This document shows, one piece after another, positions 1-60,100 of a DNA stretch of 64,000 nt (positions are counted from its first letter, which is position 1; the number at the start of each line of letters is the position of its first letter). The stretch spans positions 12,028,001 through 12,092,000 of the forward strand of contig OZ176050.1 of NCBI GenBank assembly GCA_964247055.1, written 5' to 3'. A program made the translations under genes and the position numbers. This stretch comes from Paragordius varius (Eukaryota > Animalia > Nematomorpha). The notes under the pieces are model-generated. The model made no database searches, was not told where the DNA came from, and saw only the letters and a program-made list of their open reading frames with translations.

Positions 1-3000
1 TTGCTTTGAAATACGACCCTTTGTCCCAAAACATGATATGGTCTGACAATGGCCATCACAATTTGCAGTATAGATCCCTATCCCATTTTATCAAGCATGG
101 TCAACTAGAAAAAGAGTTTGATTCATACGCTGGGAAAAAAATGGTTCATGGCAAAATCTTGCGATACCTCAGTTCACCAAGTTGGTTATTAATTAAATAA
201 TAATTATAGTAAAAATTGAAATTATACAAAAAAAACGTAAAAAAATAAAAACATTTTTTTTCCCTATTTTTAATTTTAACTCACTGTTTTTAACTACAAA
301 GTATAAAATAGAGAGATGGGAATCGGTACACAATTAGTTATATATATTTTACAGTAACTAAATGGTTTACAAGGAAAAATAAGGTTTAAAAATAGTATGA
401 GTGTCTTTTGGAATAAAAAAATTGGTATTTATATTTTTACGTTTTGTCCGTATAATTTCAATTTTTACTCTATAATTTTCTTGGATGATAAGATAAAAAT
501 TTTTAGAAATATAAACCTATTAAATGATTGGCCCTTTTATTTCATTATCTTTTTTTTAGCTTTTCAAAAATTAAAAACGTTGTTATACTGGGAATATATG
601 TTATTTCTGTATTTCAGACGGTTTTACTGATGGTATTGCTATTGAACCTATACGCCGACTATTATACTACACTGACAGCTATGAAAATTACATTGGGGTT
701 TATGATTTAGAAGCTGCATACAATAAACGTCTACTTGAAGGATTAAGTCGCCCAAGAAGCATAACATTAGATAGGATTCATGGGTACTATATTATAAAAT
801 ACAAATAATGATTTGAAAATATATGATGAGTTTTAAAAATCAGAAAAAATTAAGTCCTAAACTTAAATTTTAACAGTATAGTCATTTTTGTTGAACGAAG
901 ATATATTTTGATTGCATAAATCAGCAATTTACAAAATATTTCCGCTATAACCCACATCATATTATTATTCAAAATTTTGAATCAAAATTAAAAGGTTCTT
1001 ATGTTGATGTTCTTTATGTTTATTCACCCTAGATTGATATTTTGGACAGAATGGGGTGACAAAGGAAGAATCGCATCTGCCACAATGGCTGGAACCGATG
1101 TACGAAATTTAGTCTCCAAACCGTCACGTAATCTACAATGGCCCAATGCTATCGTTTGTGATCCTAAAAGTATAGATTTTTATTACATTTTTTCTATAAA
1201 ATAATGGCTTACCTTTTTTATGGAGCGGAAATTTATAAAAAATTTGCATACATTCTTTAAAGTCATTTGATTAGGATCCGTAATATTTGTCTTGTGTGTT
1301 TACAATTTCAATTTTTACTGTAAATGTTAACGTTATCTTATTTGCATATTAAAGGAAAACATGTGTTCTGGATCGATGCTGGTTTGGGAAAACTTTTTCA
1401 AGCCAGTTACTTGGGTCATATTCTGAACGAATATAGTGTTGGAAAACATCCTTTTTCCATGGCTTTCGATTCCACCAATATATATTGGTCAGATTGGGCA
1501 ACTGATACCATTCGATCGTTAGCTATTACCAACCAAACTTCTGTAAATTTAATTTTTTTGTTGATTAAATTATTGGGTACAAAATAAGGCTTACATTATG
1601 ATGTGATGTTTTTTGTTTTCTATCAAATCATTTAAAAATTATTAAATATTTAATATATATTATATAATCATAATTGCCATTACAATTTTTTACCTTTAAA
1701 TGGTTGACATAAATTGTTTCCTTCTAAGCAAAATGAATATTTAGCACTTATATAATTCATGTTGTCACATAATAAAGAGTTATCCCAAAGATATAACGGA
1801 TCCCGTATTTGGACGTATGTTAGGCCTGGACATCTTCGAAAAAGAAAAATGGGACTCGGAATTCGCTCTGATAAAGAATTTGACTGTTTTAGATTCAAAG
1901 GATCAACTTAGTGATGGTTGTTTTACCCATGAAATTAGTTTGGAAAAGGAGATAAAAACTAGCAAGAGTGGAAATTCGCTTAGTTCCCTAGTAGGGGACG
2001 ATGGTAAGAAAAATGACATTCCATTATGGCATTCTAATGGCGGTTGTTCGCAATTTTGCTTTCCCCTCCCTGACAAAAAAAGGGCGTGTGCCTGCAACGA
2101 GGGTGAAACCTTGGGAGAAGATGGTAATTTTTATAAATTAAAAAATTTTAATACGAGGGAATTCAGCTTTGATAAAGCTAACAGAAAAACATATTTTACA
2201 TATGTCAAAGATTATTGAGTAAAAGTTTTAAATAATGTAATTTTAAATGCGGCACAATAGTTAAAACAAAAAGTTTGTATCTTCGGTATTTTTAATTAAT
2301 TTATCTCGTTTATTTTATTAAGGAATCGTAAATGGATTTAAATAAATTTTTTAATAAACATAACAACATGGTACCAATATTTTTGATTTACAATTGTCGA
2401 TTACACTGGACAACAAATTTTTCTACCACTCGAGTTTTTTGCATTTTCTGATAAGTATCAATTTAACAGTATATCTGAAATAAAAATTATAACGCCTTAT
2501 AAGAATTTTGTATAATTTGATTTTTTTTGGATTATGCGCCCTCTTTATCAAAATTTTACTAAAAAATGTTTTCCTTTGAAATACACAAGTAATGCCTATT
2601 TGTAATATATCATTCGAAAGAGTAATAAAAACTCTATAAAATGCATACTAAGTATTACATTGACAGTTAATATTGGACACAAAGATCGACAAACGCGCGA
2701 AGCGAGAGCACTTTTTTTAATTAAAATATTTTCAAAACTAATGGATGAAAATAGCTCAAATTTTGTTTAGATGGTGATGAATGTCCAAAAAAGATAACAT
2801 AAGAAAGTTTTTTTGATTAAAACATTTTTTTATTGCTTTTATGTCACTTAAAACAGCCATTTTTAAGTTTTTTGTTTTTTTGAAAATTACCTTCCCATCA
2901 ATATTAATTTATTTTCTTTACGAGGCTGATAATTTTGAAATTTTAAAGATAAAAACAAAGCTTAAGGTATTTTCGATCTTTTATAGCATGTAATAAATTT

Positions 3001-6000
3001 ACAGTTATAACTATGCATTTTAGTATCCACTAGGTAAAATATTTATGATAATAATAATTTTTATTAAAAAAACCAAAAGCTTTTTCAAACATTTTTTTTA
3101 AATTAAATACTAATATAACCCTAATAATATTAAAATAATTTATATGATTTTCAAATTAGTTTGTCTGAGAAAATTTTTGACTTATTTAAGGATTGAAGAT
3201 TTTGACCATTTTAACCCAAATAACTTTTACATCCGAATGATTTAAATGACTTACTACCATTAAAAGATACAGTTTTTTGCGCTCTTTCGAATGATATAAA
3301 ATACATGGCTTCATATCTATAATTTTCAAAATTTCGAGTTTAATGTTAAATCGGGGCCAAAAATTATCGATAAACTCTGATTTAAAAAAATTCTTGGGTG
3401 TTCGACCAATTTTCTTTTCAGATATACTAATTATGTACTTTAATGAAATAATTAAATTTACAAGAATGGCAGTTACAAAAAGTCAAAATTTGTTGCTAGT
3501 GTTATATTATACATTTTGATATATTAAAAGGCAAAATCCCTTATTTTATATGCTTTTCCTTAGGTCTCACATGCTACATAAACGGTATACCATCCCCACG
3601 AAATAATTTAAGACGAAAAAATTTGTCCCTTTATCTCCGACCTGATTCAAACACAAATGGAGCGACAGATTTTAAGTATCGGACAGATGTCAACGATATT
3701 TTATCGATTGAATGTCCCTTATTGAGTACACCACCTTTTGCTAAGCTTGTGGCATATGATACAAACATTAAAGGGTTTAATCTTCATGATAGAGCCATCG
3801 TAGAACACAAATGTGATGACGGATTCAATCAAACCGGGGGCAATGATAGGCGGGTATGTTCCTTTAACTCAGCTTACACGGGCGTGACTTGGAGTGGTAA
3901 ACCCCTAATATGTTCCCGTAAGTCAATTAATATATCTACAAGCCTTCTAAAAATGTTTCTAATTCAAACATTTTACCGTTATATAACATTTTTTCGTTTT
4001 ATTTATTAGCTATAATCTGTCCGACTTTCTCGATTCCTAATACTGTGGTCAATATATCTTGTTCTGAAATGGGATATGGTAAAGAATGTTCGCTAGATTG
4101 CATAAATGGTACTAAATACATTTCGGGTGACAAGATTCGCACTTGTCAATTGGATGGTCAGTGGTCAGGGTCACTCTTGGTTTGCGAAGGTAAAATTTTA
4201 AATTAATTACTTAAATTCTAAGCATGATATACCATGTAACCTTACATTCACCCTTAATCAATTCAAACTCATTTTTAAACTAAATTCACCCAAAAAATTA
4301 AAAAAATGTGCTTTTAGGCTAATTTAACTCATTTATATATACATATATTATATAGGGATAAAGATTCCATGCAAATTACCTAACTTTAATAATCACAATA
4401 TAATTTCGCAAAATTGTACCTCGAATGGTCTGTTGAATTCAAATAGCGTTTGTCATTTAACTTGTAAGCCTAAAGAAGTCTTTCAAACCTTTCATCGCAT
4501 CAATGGTTCCAACAAAATTGTTTGCAATGCAAATGGTACGCTAAGCGATGATCCACTTTTGTGCACAAGTAATTTTATAACAGTATATCTATAAAAGTAT
4601 GTTCCTAGTTTTCATTAAATAATACTAAGTTGCACTAGTAAAGAGCACACCTTGATTCAACTTTTTTTCTTTCGTTTGAGCCAGGAATGTCCAACACAAA
4701 TGGTTTAGCAGACCGCATTTTTGGATCAAAATATCCGTCGGGCCGCATTCAAAAAATATATGGGCATTGACTAATAATTTATTAGATTTCATACTCTAGA
4801 ATTTAAAACTACTTATTATTTTAACAATTTCTGCTGGTTCAGTGCGGAAATTCGAAAAAATTTATTCATAAAATTTGTTTGTGAAAATTAATTTTACTAA
4901 TTTCGTAAAATTTTTCATTTGAAACTTCTCGCGGGTTGCATATTTATTTGGGTCGCATATTCCCCGCGGGCCGCCCTCACCCCTGATTTAAGCCAACAAA
5001 ACTTCCCTTTACTAAAATTCTATGTAGCAATTTAATTATATATATTAGAATTTTTCTTAACTCATTATAAATATATATTTTATACAAAAAAATATTTATA
5101 ACATTATCAAAAAATATTTATTTCTCTAGGCATACCCCATTGTGAAGATCCCTTAAAATCAGTCTTCGCCCCTCCTATGCGCTATAAAACTGTTGATTGC
5201 AACCCAGAATACCTAAATGGGAGTAACTGTCGTTTAGAGTGCGCTGATGGTTTCAACTATTTAAGCGGAAGTTATGATCATACATGCCACGTTCAAACAG
5301 ATAAAAATAATGTCCTTAAAGGAAAATGGATTGGATCAAAATTATTTTGCACTGGTTTTTATTAATTTAAATTTTTATTATTGATAACACATATCATAAA
5401 AATTATCTTTTAAAAATTAAAATATTTTTCTATGTAGAATGTTCGTCAATGGGCAATGAATTAAAAGAACGAAATTTGAAAGCAATGTGCACTGAAGAGC
5501 TTATTCACCTTAACTCAACAAATTCACAGCCATCTGATCTGAAATCTCAAACAGTATGTGACATTCAATGTCAGAATCCGGAGTACGTCAATGTACTAGC
5601 TTTTAAAGGTGGCGAATTCATTGATAAAAACAATAGGTCAAGTTCTGCTAAAATTGCATGTCAAAAGTTAGTAATTTCTGAAGGAAATACTTCAAAACTA
5701 TCAGTTAATGAATCAAATAACCATAAGATCTCAAACTTTAAAGAGACACAGTTCAATTGGATAAACCTGAATACAAATGCAACCCTTAATACGGAATTCG
5801 ACTACCCCCAGTGTGGAAGTAAAACTTAGCATATAAATAAATTGTCTAGTTATGACTGGTTATGGATGCATTCATGATTATTATAAAAACTTCTAAATAT
5901 ATTTTTAGCTCGTGATTAAATATGTAAAATATTAATATAACAATTAATATACAGTTTTAAAGTTTTATCGAAAATTTTATTAATTGCTATTTTATATTTT

Positions 6001-8755
6001 GACATTTTAACTTAATTTGATCAGATTAAATTATGTTTGTTATTACGATATATATCGATTTGATAATGGCTGATAATAGCCATCTTTGGTGAAATCGCCT
6101 TTAATTTTTTGACCGCTCCTCATCCATCCCTATACAATGTCTATTTTTCAAATAGAATTCATAAATTTTTTGCTGGTTTAGAAATTTTTCAAACACAAAC
6201 ATTTTTGCTTACAATTCCATTCGACACTGAGCCTCGTGATGACAAATTTTTGGGAAACCCCATAAATTGTGGCCTAATTGGAAAATCGTTATACCAATAT
6301 ATCATTGAAAAGCTACCCAATACAATCCCTAAAACAATTACAAACAGACCAATGGAAGTAACTTTTTGCGATGAGCACGAAATGAAGTTTTCATCCGGAA
6401 TACACTGTAAATGGGTAACTAAATTGAATGATACCCAGTGTGTGATTAACAAGAACAATGCGAAAAATCAAAATCATTTAAATGCTGGTCCGCACATATT
6501 GATCATTATTCAAAGGTATGTGTTTTAATTTTCCCAGGAAAGATTAGAAAAAGAAAAATAAATTAAATTATGTATTAATAAAATAGATCAATTTTAAATT
6601 TTATTTTTTCAGAATCTTTTAAATGGATTTAAGGATGATGATAATAATGAACGATTTTAAAAATTAATGTAATGTAATTTAAACGTTAGATCCAAAGATG
6701 ATTCTGATAAATCGCCAGAATCACTAACCATGGATTTGCTAAGGATCTCACCGTGGATTCAGGAAAATAAAATACGAGACAAAGCATTTAATCTAACTCT
6801 GAATGCCAGCCATCTCCATAAGGCAAACTTGGTTAAAGTATGTCCGTTAGGAACAATACCTATTCCTGATTCCAATTGTGGTACTTTTTTTGTTGTTTTG
6901 TTGCAAAATATTTTTAGGGTATTAAATTTGAGAATTATAAATTAAATTTTCACATATATTTTTAAGTCCAATGCCCAAAAGGAACCTTTCACAACGCAAA
7001 ACTTGATAGTTGCGATTTATGTCAAATTGGATATTATCAAGATAATCCTGGCACTGATGCATGCTTCAAATGTCCACCTAAAACATCTACAAAACATATG
7101 GGTTCAACCCAAGTCTTACAATGCTTGAAAGGAACATTCATAGCGAAAAGTATAAAACGATTATTAGTTTTAAAAAATTTTTTATTGTCAATTGTTTTAC
7201 CTTAAATGTTATCGTGATAGAAGGACTCAAATACTCACAAATTGCCTTGTTAATCGCGATAATTCTACTCATTTTAACTATCATGCTGGGAGCTGTTATG
7301 TTCTGTCTCCGCAAGTATGTGCTTATTATTTTTACATTTTTCATAAAAAAATTAAAATTTCTTATTTCGAAAAAGATTTTGAAAAGTTTTTTTCCTATGC
7401 GTATTTAAAACTTTAATACAAGTAAAATTTATATCAAAATATTCAACGATTCACGATTAAAATCAAATTGAATGATTTTATAAAAATATAGGATTAAAAA
7501 CTAGGTTGAAATAAATGCAGTCCTAAAACGGGTTTACATTGATTTGATGGTTATTAACTCTCATTAGTAAGTAATGTTAGACATCGCACTGATAAAATTA
7601 AAATCTAGTTATAAGGCCTCTTTGGTTTCAATAACTGGTTTAATTTGTAAAATGTAAAATATAATGAAAATTTTAGAAAAATATAAGAAATCTAGTATTT
7701 AATTTGTTGGATCAACGAAAATCTTGGTAAATTGTTATTTGGAAGGTGGTGGTACATTGGTTATCCTGGATTCTATGTTTTGCGTATGAGTAAAAAGTTT
7801 GAAATTAGAAACTGCAGAGTTTTTTGTCATAACTGGGGCAGGCAAGTGTTAATGCTTTCATGGGTCCTTAATACAATTTTATCTTACCTTCTATAACTGT
7901 ATATAAATTTGGTCATTTAAAATATAATTTTGACTCATAGCAAATTACTTATGACCTTAGTTTTTCGATGGGAGAATAAATTTAAATATAAAGGGTTTTT
8001 TATATCTAAGAGGCGGTTTAACAGCGGTTGGAAATGGACCTCAAAATTCTCGATTTAGGACGAATATATTTTTTAATGGATTTATACAAAAGCTTTTAAA
8101 AGGAGTGTTATGTATTGATCGCATATTTTATTGGAACTAATTTAAAGTGTCATAACTTAAAATTATTATATATATTCGTAAACATTAATATTGCTTAAAA
8201 TAAAAATCTTGATGTAGCGCGTCAGAATGCCAAATTTTTAAAAGATTTGAATTATCGCTTAGAAAGGTCGAAAAAAATTAACCGTAACGGGGGCGGTTTT
8301 TAAAATTTCAACGAGACAGAATTAGAACTTCGGAGTCAGAAGCAGAATAGTTTTGTCAGAAAAATAGAGCACTGTTTTATGCTCAAAACTCAGTAACAAA
8401 TTATGGTTTCGATGGTTACGGTTTCAAACTTTATTATATTAGGTAAATAAAGTGTTACTAATTTAATGTATTATATGTCTTTTTTATGTAGAATTCCAAA
8501 GTCATATATCAAATCAATTTTTTCCATTAGATAAAATTTGATTTTGATTTAAACAATAACTTCGGCAAATTTCACACCAGATGTAACATTTATATTTGCT
8601 TTAGAAAACCCAGAGTCATTTATCGAATCGCTGAAAAATTCCGTAAAGCCAATATCTATGGGTCATCGAATTCTTCAAACAACAGTAATACTGATACAAG
8701 ACCATATGCAGAAACGAATGAAATGACTCATGTACCATATGGAAACTTTGCATAA
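1..8755 (+). CDS. Mosaic single-pass receptor A (LRP-like YWTD propeller - EGF - about 5 sushi/CCP - SEA-like - GCC2/GCC3 - TM - tail), 5' end outside window
   Basis: 15 phase-consistent GT-AG exons: <1-180, 618-783, 1033-1169, 1355-1542, 1778-2123, 3564-3917, 4010-4189, 4356-4568, 5130-5354, 5438-5818, 6182-6515, 6690-6880, 6967-7149, 7221-7314, 8605-8755. YWTD-type repeats (DGIAIEPIRRLLYYTD, LIFWTEWG, VFWID, IYWSDW); EGF (NGGCSQFCFPLPDKKRACACNEGETLGEDGLTC); CCP modules (YISGDKIRTCQLDGQWSGSLLVC); GCC2/3 (CPKGTFHNAKLDSCDLCQIGYYQDNPGTDACFKCP); TM (IALLIAIILLILTIMLGAVMFCL); tail ends EMTHVPYGNFA-stop. Confidence 0.9.
2400..3420. mobile_element. Probable decayed MITE in an intron of receptor A
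   Basis: Perfect 17-bp inverted pair TATATCATTCGAAAGAG (about 2606) / CTCTTTCGAATGATATA (about 3282) in a 1.4-kb intron. Termini and TSD not resolved. Confidence 0.35.
4682..4985. mobile_element. hAT-type MITE (intronic)
   Basis: Ends CAGGAATG...CACCCCTG; flanks GTTTGAGC / ATTTAAGC (6/8 match, candidate 8-bp TSD); GC-rich subterminal CGGGCCGC motifs in AT-rich intron. Confidence 0.5.
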
Positions 8756-9360
8756 ACAACTGCCAACCAAACCAAAAATCCTTACTTAAGATAAAAAAAA
8801 CTGTCAGGACAATATTTTCTTTATATCATGTTTTTTGATTGAATTTCACAAAACATTGCTCAATTGATATACATACTACACCCGGTGCTAATTATAAAAC
8901 ATTTTTTTCTTTGTAAATATATTAAAATGTTTTACAACTAATATATTTTATGCAAAAGAAACTGATACATTTATGCCTCTGTAATTATATGTCTGCCAAC
9001 ACAATTCGCATCCCTTTTGCAGATATATCGACAATTCTGACCAAAAATTTATACAATTTTTATGCAAAAATTATATAACCAATTACCAATATGCAATAAA
9101 TGAACCTTAATCACTACATCTTACATCTATATTTTGAGGCTTGCTAAATATAAAGTTAATGTATTGGAGTTTAATTACGTGACTATTGGATAAGAATAGA
9201 TAACCTTGATTAAGAGTTAACTGAAGACTGCTTTATAGTTTTTGATGTTTTTTAGCCAATTCGTAAAAAACCTTTGAACTTCAGAAGCCATCGAACTTTG
9301 TAAAAATAAAATATATAAGGCAATCAAATTATCATAAAATTCATTATCTGGAAATTTTGT

Positions 9361-53988: not shown

Positions 53989-56900
53989 TTAAAAGGTTTC
54001 ATAAGGGACATTTGTCATTTCCTGTGTGTCAGCTTTTCCACGTCCTGAAAGTGTCGGTGGCAGAGGTATTTTTGCAATAGCGGGTAATTTCATTCTAAAT
54101 TAATGTATTAAAAAATATGATAATTAAAGGGCATCAAATAATACACTAGAAAAAGAGTTTATTTTTTAATAAAATAGTACGTTTACCCTCTTCGATGATA
54201 TAAGGTAAAAGCACCAATGAGAATGGCTATTAGGAGGAATAGCACCAAAGCCACAACCAAAGCTGCTCCACTCGTCATATTTGAGCCTGTAAAAAAATGT
54301 TAAAACAAAATTTGTCAATTGAAATAACTTATAAGATTAACAATGCTAATTTTATATAAATATTACCCGATAGTTTATAAAATAAAGCGCATTTTATTAT
54401 AGTAGAGAAAGCTAATAAAATAAACTTAAACCATTAATATTATATCCATTGAAAAGCTAGCAATGCATAATTTATTAACACTGTATATTAGACGATAAAA
54501 AAATTTGTCACTCTTTTAAAAGAAATGAGGTTACTTGTTTTGAGTGAAGAAGCATTGATAGATATAGAGCTTTGGCATTGTGAAGAGCCTGGATAAAGTG
54601 TTGTGTAAGAATCAAGACATTTTTCACATTTGGTTTGACCTGCAAGTGCTTGATAAGTTCCAACCGGACAAACTGTACACTTTTGTGAAAGTTTGTCGTA
54701 AAAAGTACCGACAGGGCACGCAGCTAATATATATATATTACAAAATAGGTTTTTGTAAAACTCCTTGACTTATAAATTTTTAAGCGTAGACTTTATATAC
54801 CATTTACAATTCAAATTCACCCTAAAAATAAATTATATGTTTTAACTAATAATATATTCATTATTTATATGAAATATATCTTCATGGCTTTTATTATTTT
54901 TTCAGTAATATTATAACTCAAATTTTTTTAAAAAAATTAATAAATATAGGTGATTTTTAATCTTAAAAAACATAAAATTTTATTTGATGGTTATTTTGAA
55001 TTATAAGGGTGAATTCATTTTTAAGGATATTTAAAATACAATAGAAAAAAAGTTACTGGACCTACAAAATATTAAGTTTGTGGGTATTTAAAATCATCAT
55101 ACTAAACCAAAATTCTTCAGCCTTTTTTTGTATGTGAACCGTAGTTGAATAAATAAATTTCCATTAAAATAATAAGTTTTTCGTTTACAATAAATTATTG
55201 AGTTATTATTATATATCTTTAATTAAAAGTTTAAAATACGTACCGCAATCATTTGTGTTTGCTATTAATACGTGCCCTTTGGCACAAGTGATATCATCTA
55301 TGGAACCTTCTGAGCGGCGATATCGAATGTTGGAGAGTGCTGGATCAATATTGAATTTAGGTGCGACACTGACTAAACGTACTGATGAAAATATGCCACT
55401 TTTAACGGATTTGTCAAAATTTCGGGCTAAATTTGTCATATTTATGGCAAAATCTGACGTTTTTTGAACGCCCTCTTGAGCCGGGAAGAATTGACCATTC
55501 AACGAACTGCATAATTAATGACAAAAAAAATATTATATTCATAACACCTTTTCAGACGGTAAATAATGATAAAATATAGTCTGAATAAATTGGAATAAAA
55601 AGTTAAGAGAACTAATAATGAAAATGAAATAGTGTAAGAAAAGTATGTTATTAAATATACTTTTGTGTTCCAAAACTGTATGTGTAGTTGAACCAATTTG
55701 AGTTTTTACTTTCCATGCATTGTACCTAATACAAATAAATCTAAGTTAGTTTGGCAAAGGTAAACGGTGTTCATTAAAATTAAAGATCATAATAAAGAAA
55801 ATGGCCTAAATTTCTATAAGTTAGGGTTGAGTTTAACTGGTTAGGAATGCAAAAATGCCCCTTACTAAAACCGTTTACAAAATAACCCTCAGGAAATATA
55901 AAACAATGGTATCAAATGTTTAAATTTTTTTCGATTCTAATTCATGGTTAAAAACATTGCCAGAATCAAATTTAATTGGTTAATTTTCTTTTTTGTTACA
56001 ATATAAATCTAATTTTAACAATTTAAAACCCCAATCAAAATGAAATCAAATTTTTTATATACATCAAGGGAAGTTATGGTACATAAATCACTATCCATGC
56101 ATGGCATAATTAGGGGTGAATTCCTTAACCATTTTTTGATTGCTCCAAGGAGTATTGTATCATCACATTCTTGATTCCTGTCATATTTATCTTTGGGATC
56201 AGTGAAGTATAACACTATGTTACCGGATATTTTTTGCGACTCCGGTAATACCAAATCTATTGTACATAAATATTTTAGTAAAATTAATATTGTATAGGGA
56301 CGCTTCTTTTAATACCATTTGCAATTCAAATTCACACTTGAATAATTACAATTCACCCTAAAAATAAATTATGTGTTTTCGTGATAATATAATACATCAT
56401 TAATATGAAATATATTTTTACTACATAGTTTATTATATTAATTTTAACAGAATTTCATATTTTCAAAAATATTATAAAATAAAGGTAATTTTTAATCTTA
56501 AAAAACACATAATATATTTTAGTAATTTAAATGTTCAAGGGTGAATTTGAATTGTTCGGGATGAATTTAAATTATTCGAAGGTGAATTTAAACTGTAAAT
56601 GGTATATTATACCATAATGAACATTATAAGATAAAACAAAATAAAAGACTAATATTTTTTATAGGAAAACCATTTTTCTCGATCCTTAATAAGTGTACCT
56701 ATATGATTATAATTGTAAAATAATTTGCATATAAAAACAATTTACATCTTTATTTATTTCTCGGACTAATATAAGAAGATACTTTAGTAAACAAGGATAA
56801 ATTGAATTCTATAAATTTTGGTTTTTAATTTTTTATTTTCGTCCTTATATAATTTCATTACAAAAATTTTAGGAAACCCACACCTAGCTTTATTTCAAAA

Positions 56901-57191: not shown

Positions 57192-60100
57192 GAGAAAAAT
57201 ACCACTACATCCAGGTACAGTATTCAACGTTGGATTCCACATCAAATCGGCGTTCAAAAGGTTATCGAACCCATCGGAAGGACATATAAATGAATTGGTA
57301 TAAATGTTATTAATGGTAGAGGGAGAAGAAACTTTATTTTTTCCATTGTACACAATGTTATTACGGTTAGTTCGTGTCAAATCAATATCGGCAAAATTTA
57401 TAGCAAGTCCAGTTCCTGGATCACAAACGATTGAACAAGCGGTTTGGGGACCGTTTTGTTTAAAATTCATTCTTTATACATTCATATATATATATATATA
57501 TATTTGGAAATGAAAATGCGTAAAATTATGAGGCTAATTTTTAAATAAACCCCTTAAGAGAACAGAACAGTTGGAAACTGTGATAAAATATTGACACTTT
57601 ATTTCAATTATTATCACAAAATCTTTCTTGTAAATATTGTAAAAAATATAGTAGCACATAATATAGTAATCCCATTTTAACATGAGAATACAATATTTTT
57701 TTTAAAATTAATATTACACAATAAACCAAAAATTATACGAATATTGATGGGGAGAAAGTACATAAACCAACTAAAATCTTTTTTATTACCTGTCACAAAC
57801 AGACAACATTTTATCATAAAACATTAACACTATTTGCAATATTCAAACCCCATCTTTTAACAACATTATTACATTAGAAACAACATTCTTCATTCAATAC
57901 AATTAAATACTTAAAAAAATGTTGTTTTAAATTACTGAATCAACATTTTGCTACCAAGATAAACTAAAATGATACACACTTTCCAGGAGATCCAAAATTT
58001 AAAAAAATTTCAAGCATAAAATCTTTACCGGTCCGAGAGTGTGGGCGTCAAAGTATGACATTCCAACCGTCCGCGATCCGGTTTAGGAAGTTGAGAACAT
58101 GCCGAACATATGAGCGGTTCCCCGGACCAAACGCCGTTTTCAAGGCATTCCCTAGCCCTGGCCCCTGAAATGTAATTATAATTGGGGGCGCATTTATGTA
58201 CACATTGAGAACCTATAGAGAACCGTGATGTACCAACTTTATTGTTGCTATTATCGATATTATTCATTATGGGTGAAGGAGACGATGAGACATTTGTTAT
58301 GGTGGAGCCATCTTCATAACATGAAATTTCTATGGCATTTGCTGGGTTTGGTTTAGTATCACAGTATAAAGCTGTTTGTGATACATAAGAAAGAGTATTA
58401 TAGTAAGATTAATAAATGTCCGGAAAAAACTTGGGATATCAATAAATATTTAAAAATAGTTTTCTTCTATATAGTCCAAAACAGCGTTTTATTCCATTTT
58501 CACTGATAAAAAATGCCGTGTCTTAACACAGAATTTACAAAAAAAACATTTTATTAATAGAACATCATATTTATATTATGATATATTTTATACCATGGCA
58601 TGAAAGTAAGGGTTGAGACCACGTGCCATCATCCTGACAAACAGCTGTTTCGGAACCAACTTTGGGAACATATCCAGGCTTACAGCGTAAATGACAAACT
58701 TGACCGGGTTTGGGATCTAATGGACATTCTTTAACAATTACATTTTCCTCATCCAAATATGGGTATCGGCATGAAGTTTCTACAAAATATATGTATCATT
58801 AAATATCACATATTTCATTTATTTATATACTCATTAATTGGAAAATTGAATGACAGTTTGAGTTTAAGATTTTGTGAATAAAAAACATATCTTTTTAAAA
58901 GCGCATACGACCGTTATGAATGCATTTATGGTTGTGATAAACGTGTTCAAATATCATCAGTCAAAATATTTTTATACTATACTTGCACGTAATATAAAAT
59001 AAATGTGAAGGTGAACGAACGCATAAAAATACAATTATTTTTGGGAAGATCAGTATCAATTACGGTAAAATGTACAATGGAAACATGAGTGAAAAAAATA
59101 AAACAATTCAAAAGAATAGGGATAACATTTTCCTGGTACAGGTTTTTTTCTAATTAAGTTTACACATCATAAATGCATATATTCACTGTATCCGATATCA
59201 TTATAATGTGAATATATGGAAGAAAAATAAAAAATTTAATGAATTTTAACAATTTTACACTACCAATATTAGTATATAATAAACATGTGTCAAAATATTT
59301 GACTGGTTATTTTTAAAGCGATGACAATCACTCTGATAAATGCATTCGAAATCGGTCAAATTTAACCTCACATATAATTTAATAAATACCTGAAACAATT
59401 ACTATACTTTAAGCAAAAAAGACACCTTACCTAGTTCAGTTATATTTTTTGTTTGTCAAATAAAATAAAAAAAATTCTCTGCTAATTTTTTAAAAATTAA
59501 TATAAATACAAAACGTAAAAGGTATAAACCTATTTTTTAGGAAAAATCATGATTTTAACGTCAAAATTTTGAGTTGCAGAATTAAGAATGGAGATGTAAA
59601 TTGGTAACAGAGTTTAAATATTTTAATATTGTAATCATATGTGATATGTGTAAAAAATATCAAGGATAAAAAAGATATGACTATCTTTATGAAATCAATA
59701 ATAATAATAATAATCTTTTATTTTACACATTGTAATTTGTTTTTTACAATTATAAATTTTATGACATATTACTTTGACAAACTAGCGGTGAGCCGGTCCA
59801 AGATCCATCCGCATTGCACGTTCTTTCCCGATCACCACTAATGTATAAACTGCCAGGGGCGCATTGAAATACACATTTAGTTTCGAAACTGCCTGGACAC
59901 GAAACGAGGATTGTGTTGGGCGGACTAGCAAATGATGAACATGAACGTCCTAAAAAATTGTAATAAGAAAACCTTTTGTAATTATATATAAATTATATTA
60001 ATATGCTCTATGTAAATTTATTTTAAAAAAAGAAAAGAATAAGGTAAATACATCTAATATTAGGCACACATACATATTCTTCTTTAACTACTTGATATTT

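Follow-up and report, generated by a model that had tools for sequence, protein, structure and literature searches.

A candidate tyrosine-based sorting motif at the C-termini of two paralogous propeller-Sushi receptors of Paragordius varius

The window, the whole stretch of 64,000 nucleotides that was analyzed (Paragordius varius, contig OZ176050.1, positions 12,028,001 to 12,092,000), has a G + C content of 25-32%, is clearly of eukaryotic character and contains the exon series of two receptor genes. According to their open frames, gene A occupies positions 1-8755 of the plus strand and gene B positions 64000-53989 of the minus strand, so that the 3' ends of both genes face each other across 45 kb of the contig, with their exons in the same order. 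In the Pfam annotation, this order comprises blades of the Ldl_recept_b (YWTD) type, an LRP-type EGF module, four Sushi domains, three exons without an assigned family, one Ephrin_rec_like exon, the transmembrane (TM) exon and the tail exon. The features of the membrane-proximal part are listed below, with a slash marking the exon boundary in splice signals.

6966..7149, plus strand: gene A Ephrin_rec_like exon (GCC2/GCC3-type, cysteine-rich, membrane-adjoining), PF07699 with 48.5 bits and E 7.5e-13, 5' limit approximate; proposed donor AAAA/GTATAA after 7149
7221..7314, plus strand: gene A TM exon, ..GLKYSQIALLIAIILLILTIMLGAVMFCLR-K, a 23-residue hydrophobic stretch followed by R-K within the open frame 7082-7405; acceptor gatag/AA (phase 1), donor CGCAA/GTATGT (phase 2)
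8605..8755, plus strand: gene A final exon, acceptor tttag/A at 8604/8605, in a phase that fits the TM exon; one base completes the Lys codon, followed by KPRVIYRIAEKFRKANIYGSSNSSNNSNTDTRPYAETNEMTHVPYGNFA and TAA
8708..8752, plus strand: motif copy A, A-E-T-N-E-M-T-H-V-P-Y-G-N-F-A; stop codon at 8753-8755
53992..54033, minus strand: motif copy B, 14 residues ending in P-Y-E-T-F; stop codon at 53989-53991
53989..54094, minus strand: gene B final exon, acceptor atttag/A, in a phase that fits the TM exon; one base completes the Gly codon, followed by 34 residues and TAA
54059..54078, minus strand: gene B juxtamembrane I-A-K-I-P-L-P, common to a third paralogue outside the window (paralogue C, see below) and not present in gene A
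54187..54286, minus strand: gene B TM exon, acceptor ttacag/GC (phase 1), donor AGAGG/GTAAAC (phase 2)
54491..54769, minus strand: gene B open frame with the Ephrin_rec_like exon, PF07699 with 41.4 bits and E 1.3e-10; the positions are limits of the frame, not of the exon

The ectodomains resemble those of the LDL-receptor family in that YWTD propellers are followed by LRP-type EGF modules. The Ldl_recept_b (PF00058) matches reached 37.1 and 23.7 bits, and the EGF_LRP2 and FXa_inhibition scores lie slightly under their Pfam cut-offs. Further propeller exons were found within 20 kb upstream of each gene, resulting in about two propellers in A and about three in B, and no class A (LDL-A) repeats were spotted by eye in the open frames of the window and of these upstream regions. 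Unlike in the LDL-receptor family, and as in proteins of the SVEP1 type, the membrane-proximal half consists of Sushi and Ephrin_rec_like domains, between which lies a stretch of about 250 residues without a Pfam family. The fourth Sushi exon of gene A (5102-5362, plus strand) gave a weak match to PF24469, the C-terminal Sushi-like domain of F54D1.6 (18.6 bits, E 0.0022, at a cut-off of 27 bits). This likeness to the C. elegans F54D1.6 type may connect gene A with a nematode family; no PF24469 match was obtained for gene B or paralogue C.

All searches were carried out with single exons, none with the spliced, joined protein. In an exon-by-exon BLAST comparison, the exons of A and B pair in order with 30-40% identity (38% for the Ephrin_rec_like exon), and the three exons without an assigned family show no measurable similarity (z <= 2). 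A and B are therefore old, collinear paralogues, which we assign to a lineage-specific family of type I receptors.

The last intron measures 1290 nt in gene A versus 92 nt in gene B, and the predicted cytoplasmic tails comprise about 51 and 38 residues, respectively. The TM exons of A, B and paralogue C are alike in phase (1 in, 2 out). As exon order and TM-exon phases agree and a single final exon follows behind tttag in both genes, it is very probable that the 14-residue stretches described below form the actual ends of two homologous type I receptors. The tyrosine-containing sequences YGNF (A) and YETF (B) lie, in this model, 32-46 residues beyond the 23-residue TM stretch with its basic stop-transfer residues.

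The DNA sequencing runs revealed further features of the gene A introns. In the last intron, contigs of three DNA runs connect position 8214 with the earlier position 7985 through an identical 40 additional letters, which indicates either a structural variant or a repeat in rearranged form. At 8560-8584, one DNA run shows four SNPs and a deletion of 1 nt, and none of the variants listed falls into the final exon. The four runs that were compared with gene A over the range 3400-8900 consist of DNA contigs and show no splice joints. In each of them, contig depth rises to about 150,000 at 3400-3583 versus about 300 elsewhere (about 500 times), and numerous contigs end loosely at 3404 and 3451, indicating that an intron of gene A contains a short repeat of very high copy number.

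The C-terminus of gene A, translated from 8708-8755, is AETNEMTHVPYGNFA followed by the stop codon, and its 14-residue counterpart in gene B is translated from 53989-54033. Nine of the 14 residues (A, T, E, M, T, V, P, Y and F) are identical, which gives the consensus A-[ED]-T-x-E-M-T-x-V-P-Y-x-x-F with at most one residue between each copy and its stop codon. The two residues after the tyrosine differ (GN in A, ET in B), and gene A carries one additional terminal Ala (..NFA versus ..ETF), by which the register to the carboxylate is shifted by one. Over the last 17 residues, identity amounts to 59%, against 30-40% in the structural domains.

The sequence-only reading had claimed a 14-residue end with nine identical positions on two otherwise unlike tails, and both parts of this claim were borne out. 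When the tails of A and B were shuffled with preserved composition and the best 14-residue window was scored, nine identities were reached in none of 20,000 rounds; the maximum was eight, obtained twice. A search of the 110.6-Mb assembly with a DNA pattern for E-M-T-x-V-P-Y-x-x-F returned two matches, namely the motifs of A and B, and none for the reversed control. With two mismatches allowed, 13 further matches were found versus 16 in the control, and neither of the two that were inspected is located at the end of a protein. Outside the last 14-17 residues, the final exons could not be aligned. Searching the proteins of the same genome with each final exon returned the query only, with a first-look filter that is too coarse for a 14-mer. 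The reported lack of NPxY and PPPSP was likewise seen in both tails: neither NPxY nor PPP[ST]P is present, and the nearest approach to the LRP5/6 motif is L-P-P-T-L-S in gene B, which has no Pro after the Thr.

Beyond this genome, the exon 57201-57473 of gene B (minus strand) was compared with 1.84 billion representative proteins and gave no match, in a library that also lacks the query's own exon. It was picked as family-specific, since queries with YWTD, Sushi or Ephrin_rec_like domains would be swamped by multi-repeat proteins. Three metagenomic contigs containing T-x-E-M-T-x-V-P-Y-x-x-F were rejected as chance matches; the pattern is internal to unrelated frames there, at 41-46% GC.

At the codon level, the two copies differ in each of the five four-fold degenerate codons that encode identical residues (GCA/GCT, ACG/ACA, ACT/ACA, GTA/GTC and CCA/CCT). 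The codons that agree are limited to the two-fold degenerate GAA, TAT and TTT, which are the expected choices in a genome with 28% G + C. No alignment between A and B was obtained for the flanking intron, the 3' UTR or the remaining final exon. This pattern points to long purifying selection on the 14-mer at the protein level and indicates that both stretches are translated in the frame read. Because the peptide was kept while every four-fold site changed, the similarity is attributed to a constrained motif and not to chance or gene conversion.

Two explanations would remove the motif from the receptor ends or deprive it of a function of its own. One or both final exons could be mis-modelled, with another exon farther downstream or upstream being used or the gene A exon belonging to another transcript across the 1290-nt intron, for which the long and structurally polymorphic last intron of gene A might speak. 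Against this, two independent loci agree in the phase-2 TM exon, the one-base opening behind tttag, the peptide and the stop codon, and conserved residues over saturated synonymous sites indicate translation in exactly this frame; mis-modelling is considered very improbable. Alternatively, the likeness could stem from a recent gene conversion or an exon transfer, as the two neighbors lie tail to tail on one contig; this is largely refuted by the five differing four-fold sites and the unalignable flanks, and hardly any weight is given to it.

A third member of the family was found downstream of the window and has the following location:

G000:C1:12352000-12380700, plus strand: paralogue C, 260 kb downstream; tail exon at L008:109-669

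Paralogue C contains several propellers (Ldl_recept_b), Sushi and Ephrin_rec_like domains and a TM exon. Its tail of about 175 residues opens with LPLIAKIPLP and ends with SFNYQKFGNL before the stop codon. Opposite 13 aligned residues of B it reads HTANGNNQPHKT, after which about 140 more residues follow. Neither EMTxVPY nor NPxY is present in this tail, and a terminal Y-x-x-F lies four residues before the stop codon (NYQKFGNL), which alone could be due to chance (2-10% in a rough estimate). The tails of B and C share 45% identity over 31 residues in BLAST with a common juxtamembrane LPxIAKIPLP, and a genome-wide search for the IAKIPLP pattern found matches in B and C only, with none in the control.

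The tail of B thus consists of two modules, a juxtamembrane one in common with C and a terminal one in common with A. Judged from the three sequences, gene A lost or never had LPxIAKIPLP and paralogue C lost the terminal EMTxVPY module. Since C lacks EMTxVPY, the full motif appears not to be essential to the receptor family. The pattern across A, B and C suggests tails that are built from independent short modules, kept or lost separately.

Two further Ephrin_rec_like matches, C2:4288158 and C1:9570553, were rejected as family members, as they belong to EGF/pentraxin/HYR proteins of the SVEP1 or uninflatable type. They mark mosaic genes at C1:9562001-9578000 and C2:4280001-4296000, both with Ephrin_rec_like domains and neither in the A/B/C family. 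One of them is SVEP1-like, with Sushi, discoidin-like, HYR-like, three Ephrin_rec_like, many EGF and pentraxin-like domains; the other is a transmembrane, uninflatable-like gene with EGF, laminin-G-like and Ephrin_rec_like domains.

Tyrosine-based sorting signals of the YxxPhi type follow the consensus Y-x-x-[LMVIF] in the cytosolic tail. They are read by the mu subunits of the clathrin adaptors AP-1 to AP-4, which need the Y and the Phi residue only, and drive internalisation and endolysosomal routing. Examples are the C-terminal GYQTI of LAMP1 and GYEVM of CD63 as well as YTRF of TfR and YGVF of P-selectin. The proposed YxxPhi-type core was upheld as a matter of sequence class, YGNF and YETF both fitting the consensus in the predicted cytosolic segment. 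As in LAMP and CD63, Y-x-x and a bulky hydrophobic residue stand at or near the carboxyl end of a type I cytosolic tail, and P-Y-E-T-F-COOH of B is close in form to the C-terminal signal Y-E-Q-F-COOH of LAMP2 (PMC5297682). The further statement that tails of the LDL-receptor family normally use NPxY is correct in part, since the endocytosis of LRP1 proceeds mainly via the YxxPhi signal YATL and not via its NPxY motifs (PMC5297682), so that a relative of LDLR can depend on YxxPhi for its uptake. The tails of A and B differ from those of LDLR and megalin (FxNPxY), LRP1 (YATL plus NPxY) and LRP5/6 (PPP[ST]P) in carrying neither NPxY nor PPP[ST]P.

We infer all binding and trafficking of the motif, and AP-complex endocytic or endolysosomal sorting is regarded, with moderate confidence and by analogy, as its most likely function. 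The terminal Y-x-x-F within the last 4-5 residues would then act as a YxxPhi-type signal in place of the classical NPxY of LDL-receptor relatives; once recognised by AP mu subunits, it would cause the receptor to be internalised and sent along the endolysosomal route. The upstream A-[ED]-T-x-E-M-T-x-V-P would represent a family-specific context that either adjusts which adaptor binds, or how tightly, or engages a second factor. The mu-adaptin homology domains of this genome are each split over several exons.

A plain YxxPhi signal would leave ten conserved upstream residues unexplained, among them V-P before the Y, M at -5 and two Thr; in this the motif differs from YxxPhi signals, and we know of no described one that requires ten conserved upstream residues. 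Its distance of 32-46 residues from the membrane is also unlike the lysosomal GYxxPhi type: tails of 38-51 residues compare with about 11 in LAMP-type proteins, whose signal is not so far from the membrane, and the tyrosine is preceded by Pro instead of Gly. As a hypothesis, the EMTxVP half could be a separate docking or phospho-site, a proposal that rests on conservation in two paralogues of one genome, paralogue C not having kept this half. Extending this, the whole motif may tentatively be seen as an undescribed composite C-terminal docking motif of a lineage-specific family of propeller-Sushi receptors that functionally replaces FxNPxY. Its upstream half would serve to bring in a dedicated adaptor, PTB-like or other, or act as a Thr-phosphorylation switch that gates the access of AP complexes to YxxF; this is considered unlikely.

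The main rival to the AP reading, comparably doubtful, is that the 14-mer as a whole docks a different cytoplasmic adaptor, with the tyrosine embedded in an extended peptide that is read by a PTB-type domain or, after tyrosine phosphorylation, by an SH2 domain. The peptide would then serve in signalling or adaptor binding instead of being a plain AP signal. The conserved residues before the Y (V at -2, P at -1, M at -5, the two Thr) exceed the need of a mu subunit, and a family without NPxY that employs PTB adaptors should have an alternative site for them. For a PTB-type reader, the hydrophobic M at Y-5 resembles the F in FxNPxY, and the P before the Y is placed as in G-P-Y peptides, which are bound by the PTB domain of Numb. 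For an SH2 reader, V-x-Y-x-x-F resembles an ITIM, but the ITIM consensus [I/V/L/S]-x-Y-x-x-[L/V/I] is matched by V at -2 only, with F at +3 where L, V or I is wanted, and the residues after the Y differ (GN versus ET). With NPxY absent as well, no consensus is matched, and the comparison comprises two sequences only.

Quite improbable is a reading from the free C-terminus, as a PDZ ligand, a 14-3-3 mode III site or a hydrophobic ER-export signal. It is suggested by the position of both copies within one residue of the stop codon and by the end of B, where E-T-F is class III-like for PDZ domains and T at -1 would suit 14-3-3 mode III. A precedent for the dual use of a terminal YxxPhi is given by CD63, whose GYEVM is bound by AP-2 and syntenin (PMC10245948). 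The extra Ala in A, however, shifts the register. In addition, A and B do not agree in the key positions for PDZ and 14-3-3 binding, and only B has T at -1.

A CK2 site, a di-acidic DxE export signal, PPxY, a dileucine and a canonical LIR were rejected on sequence, as none of them fits both copies.

Returning to the proposed AP-complex sorting signal, its YxxPhi half belongs to a known class, and the new element would be the lineage-specific upstream extension. That the tails of paralogous receptors conserve a tyrosine motif is biologically expected, and a single genome supplied the evidence. Should the motif function in sorting or adaptor binding, these otherwise unannotated receptors, in which LRP5/6-like propellers sit on an SVEP1-like stalk of Sushi and Ephrin_rec_like domains, would be marked as endocytic cargo receptors. 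The motif would then also constitute a short, mutable handle on the trafficking of the receptors.
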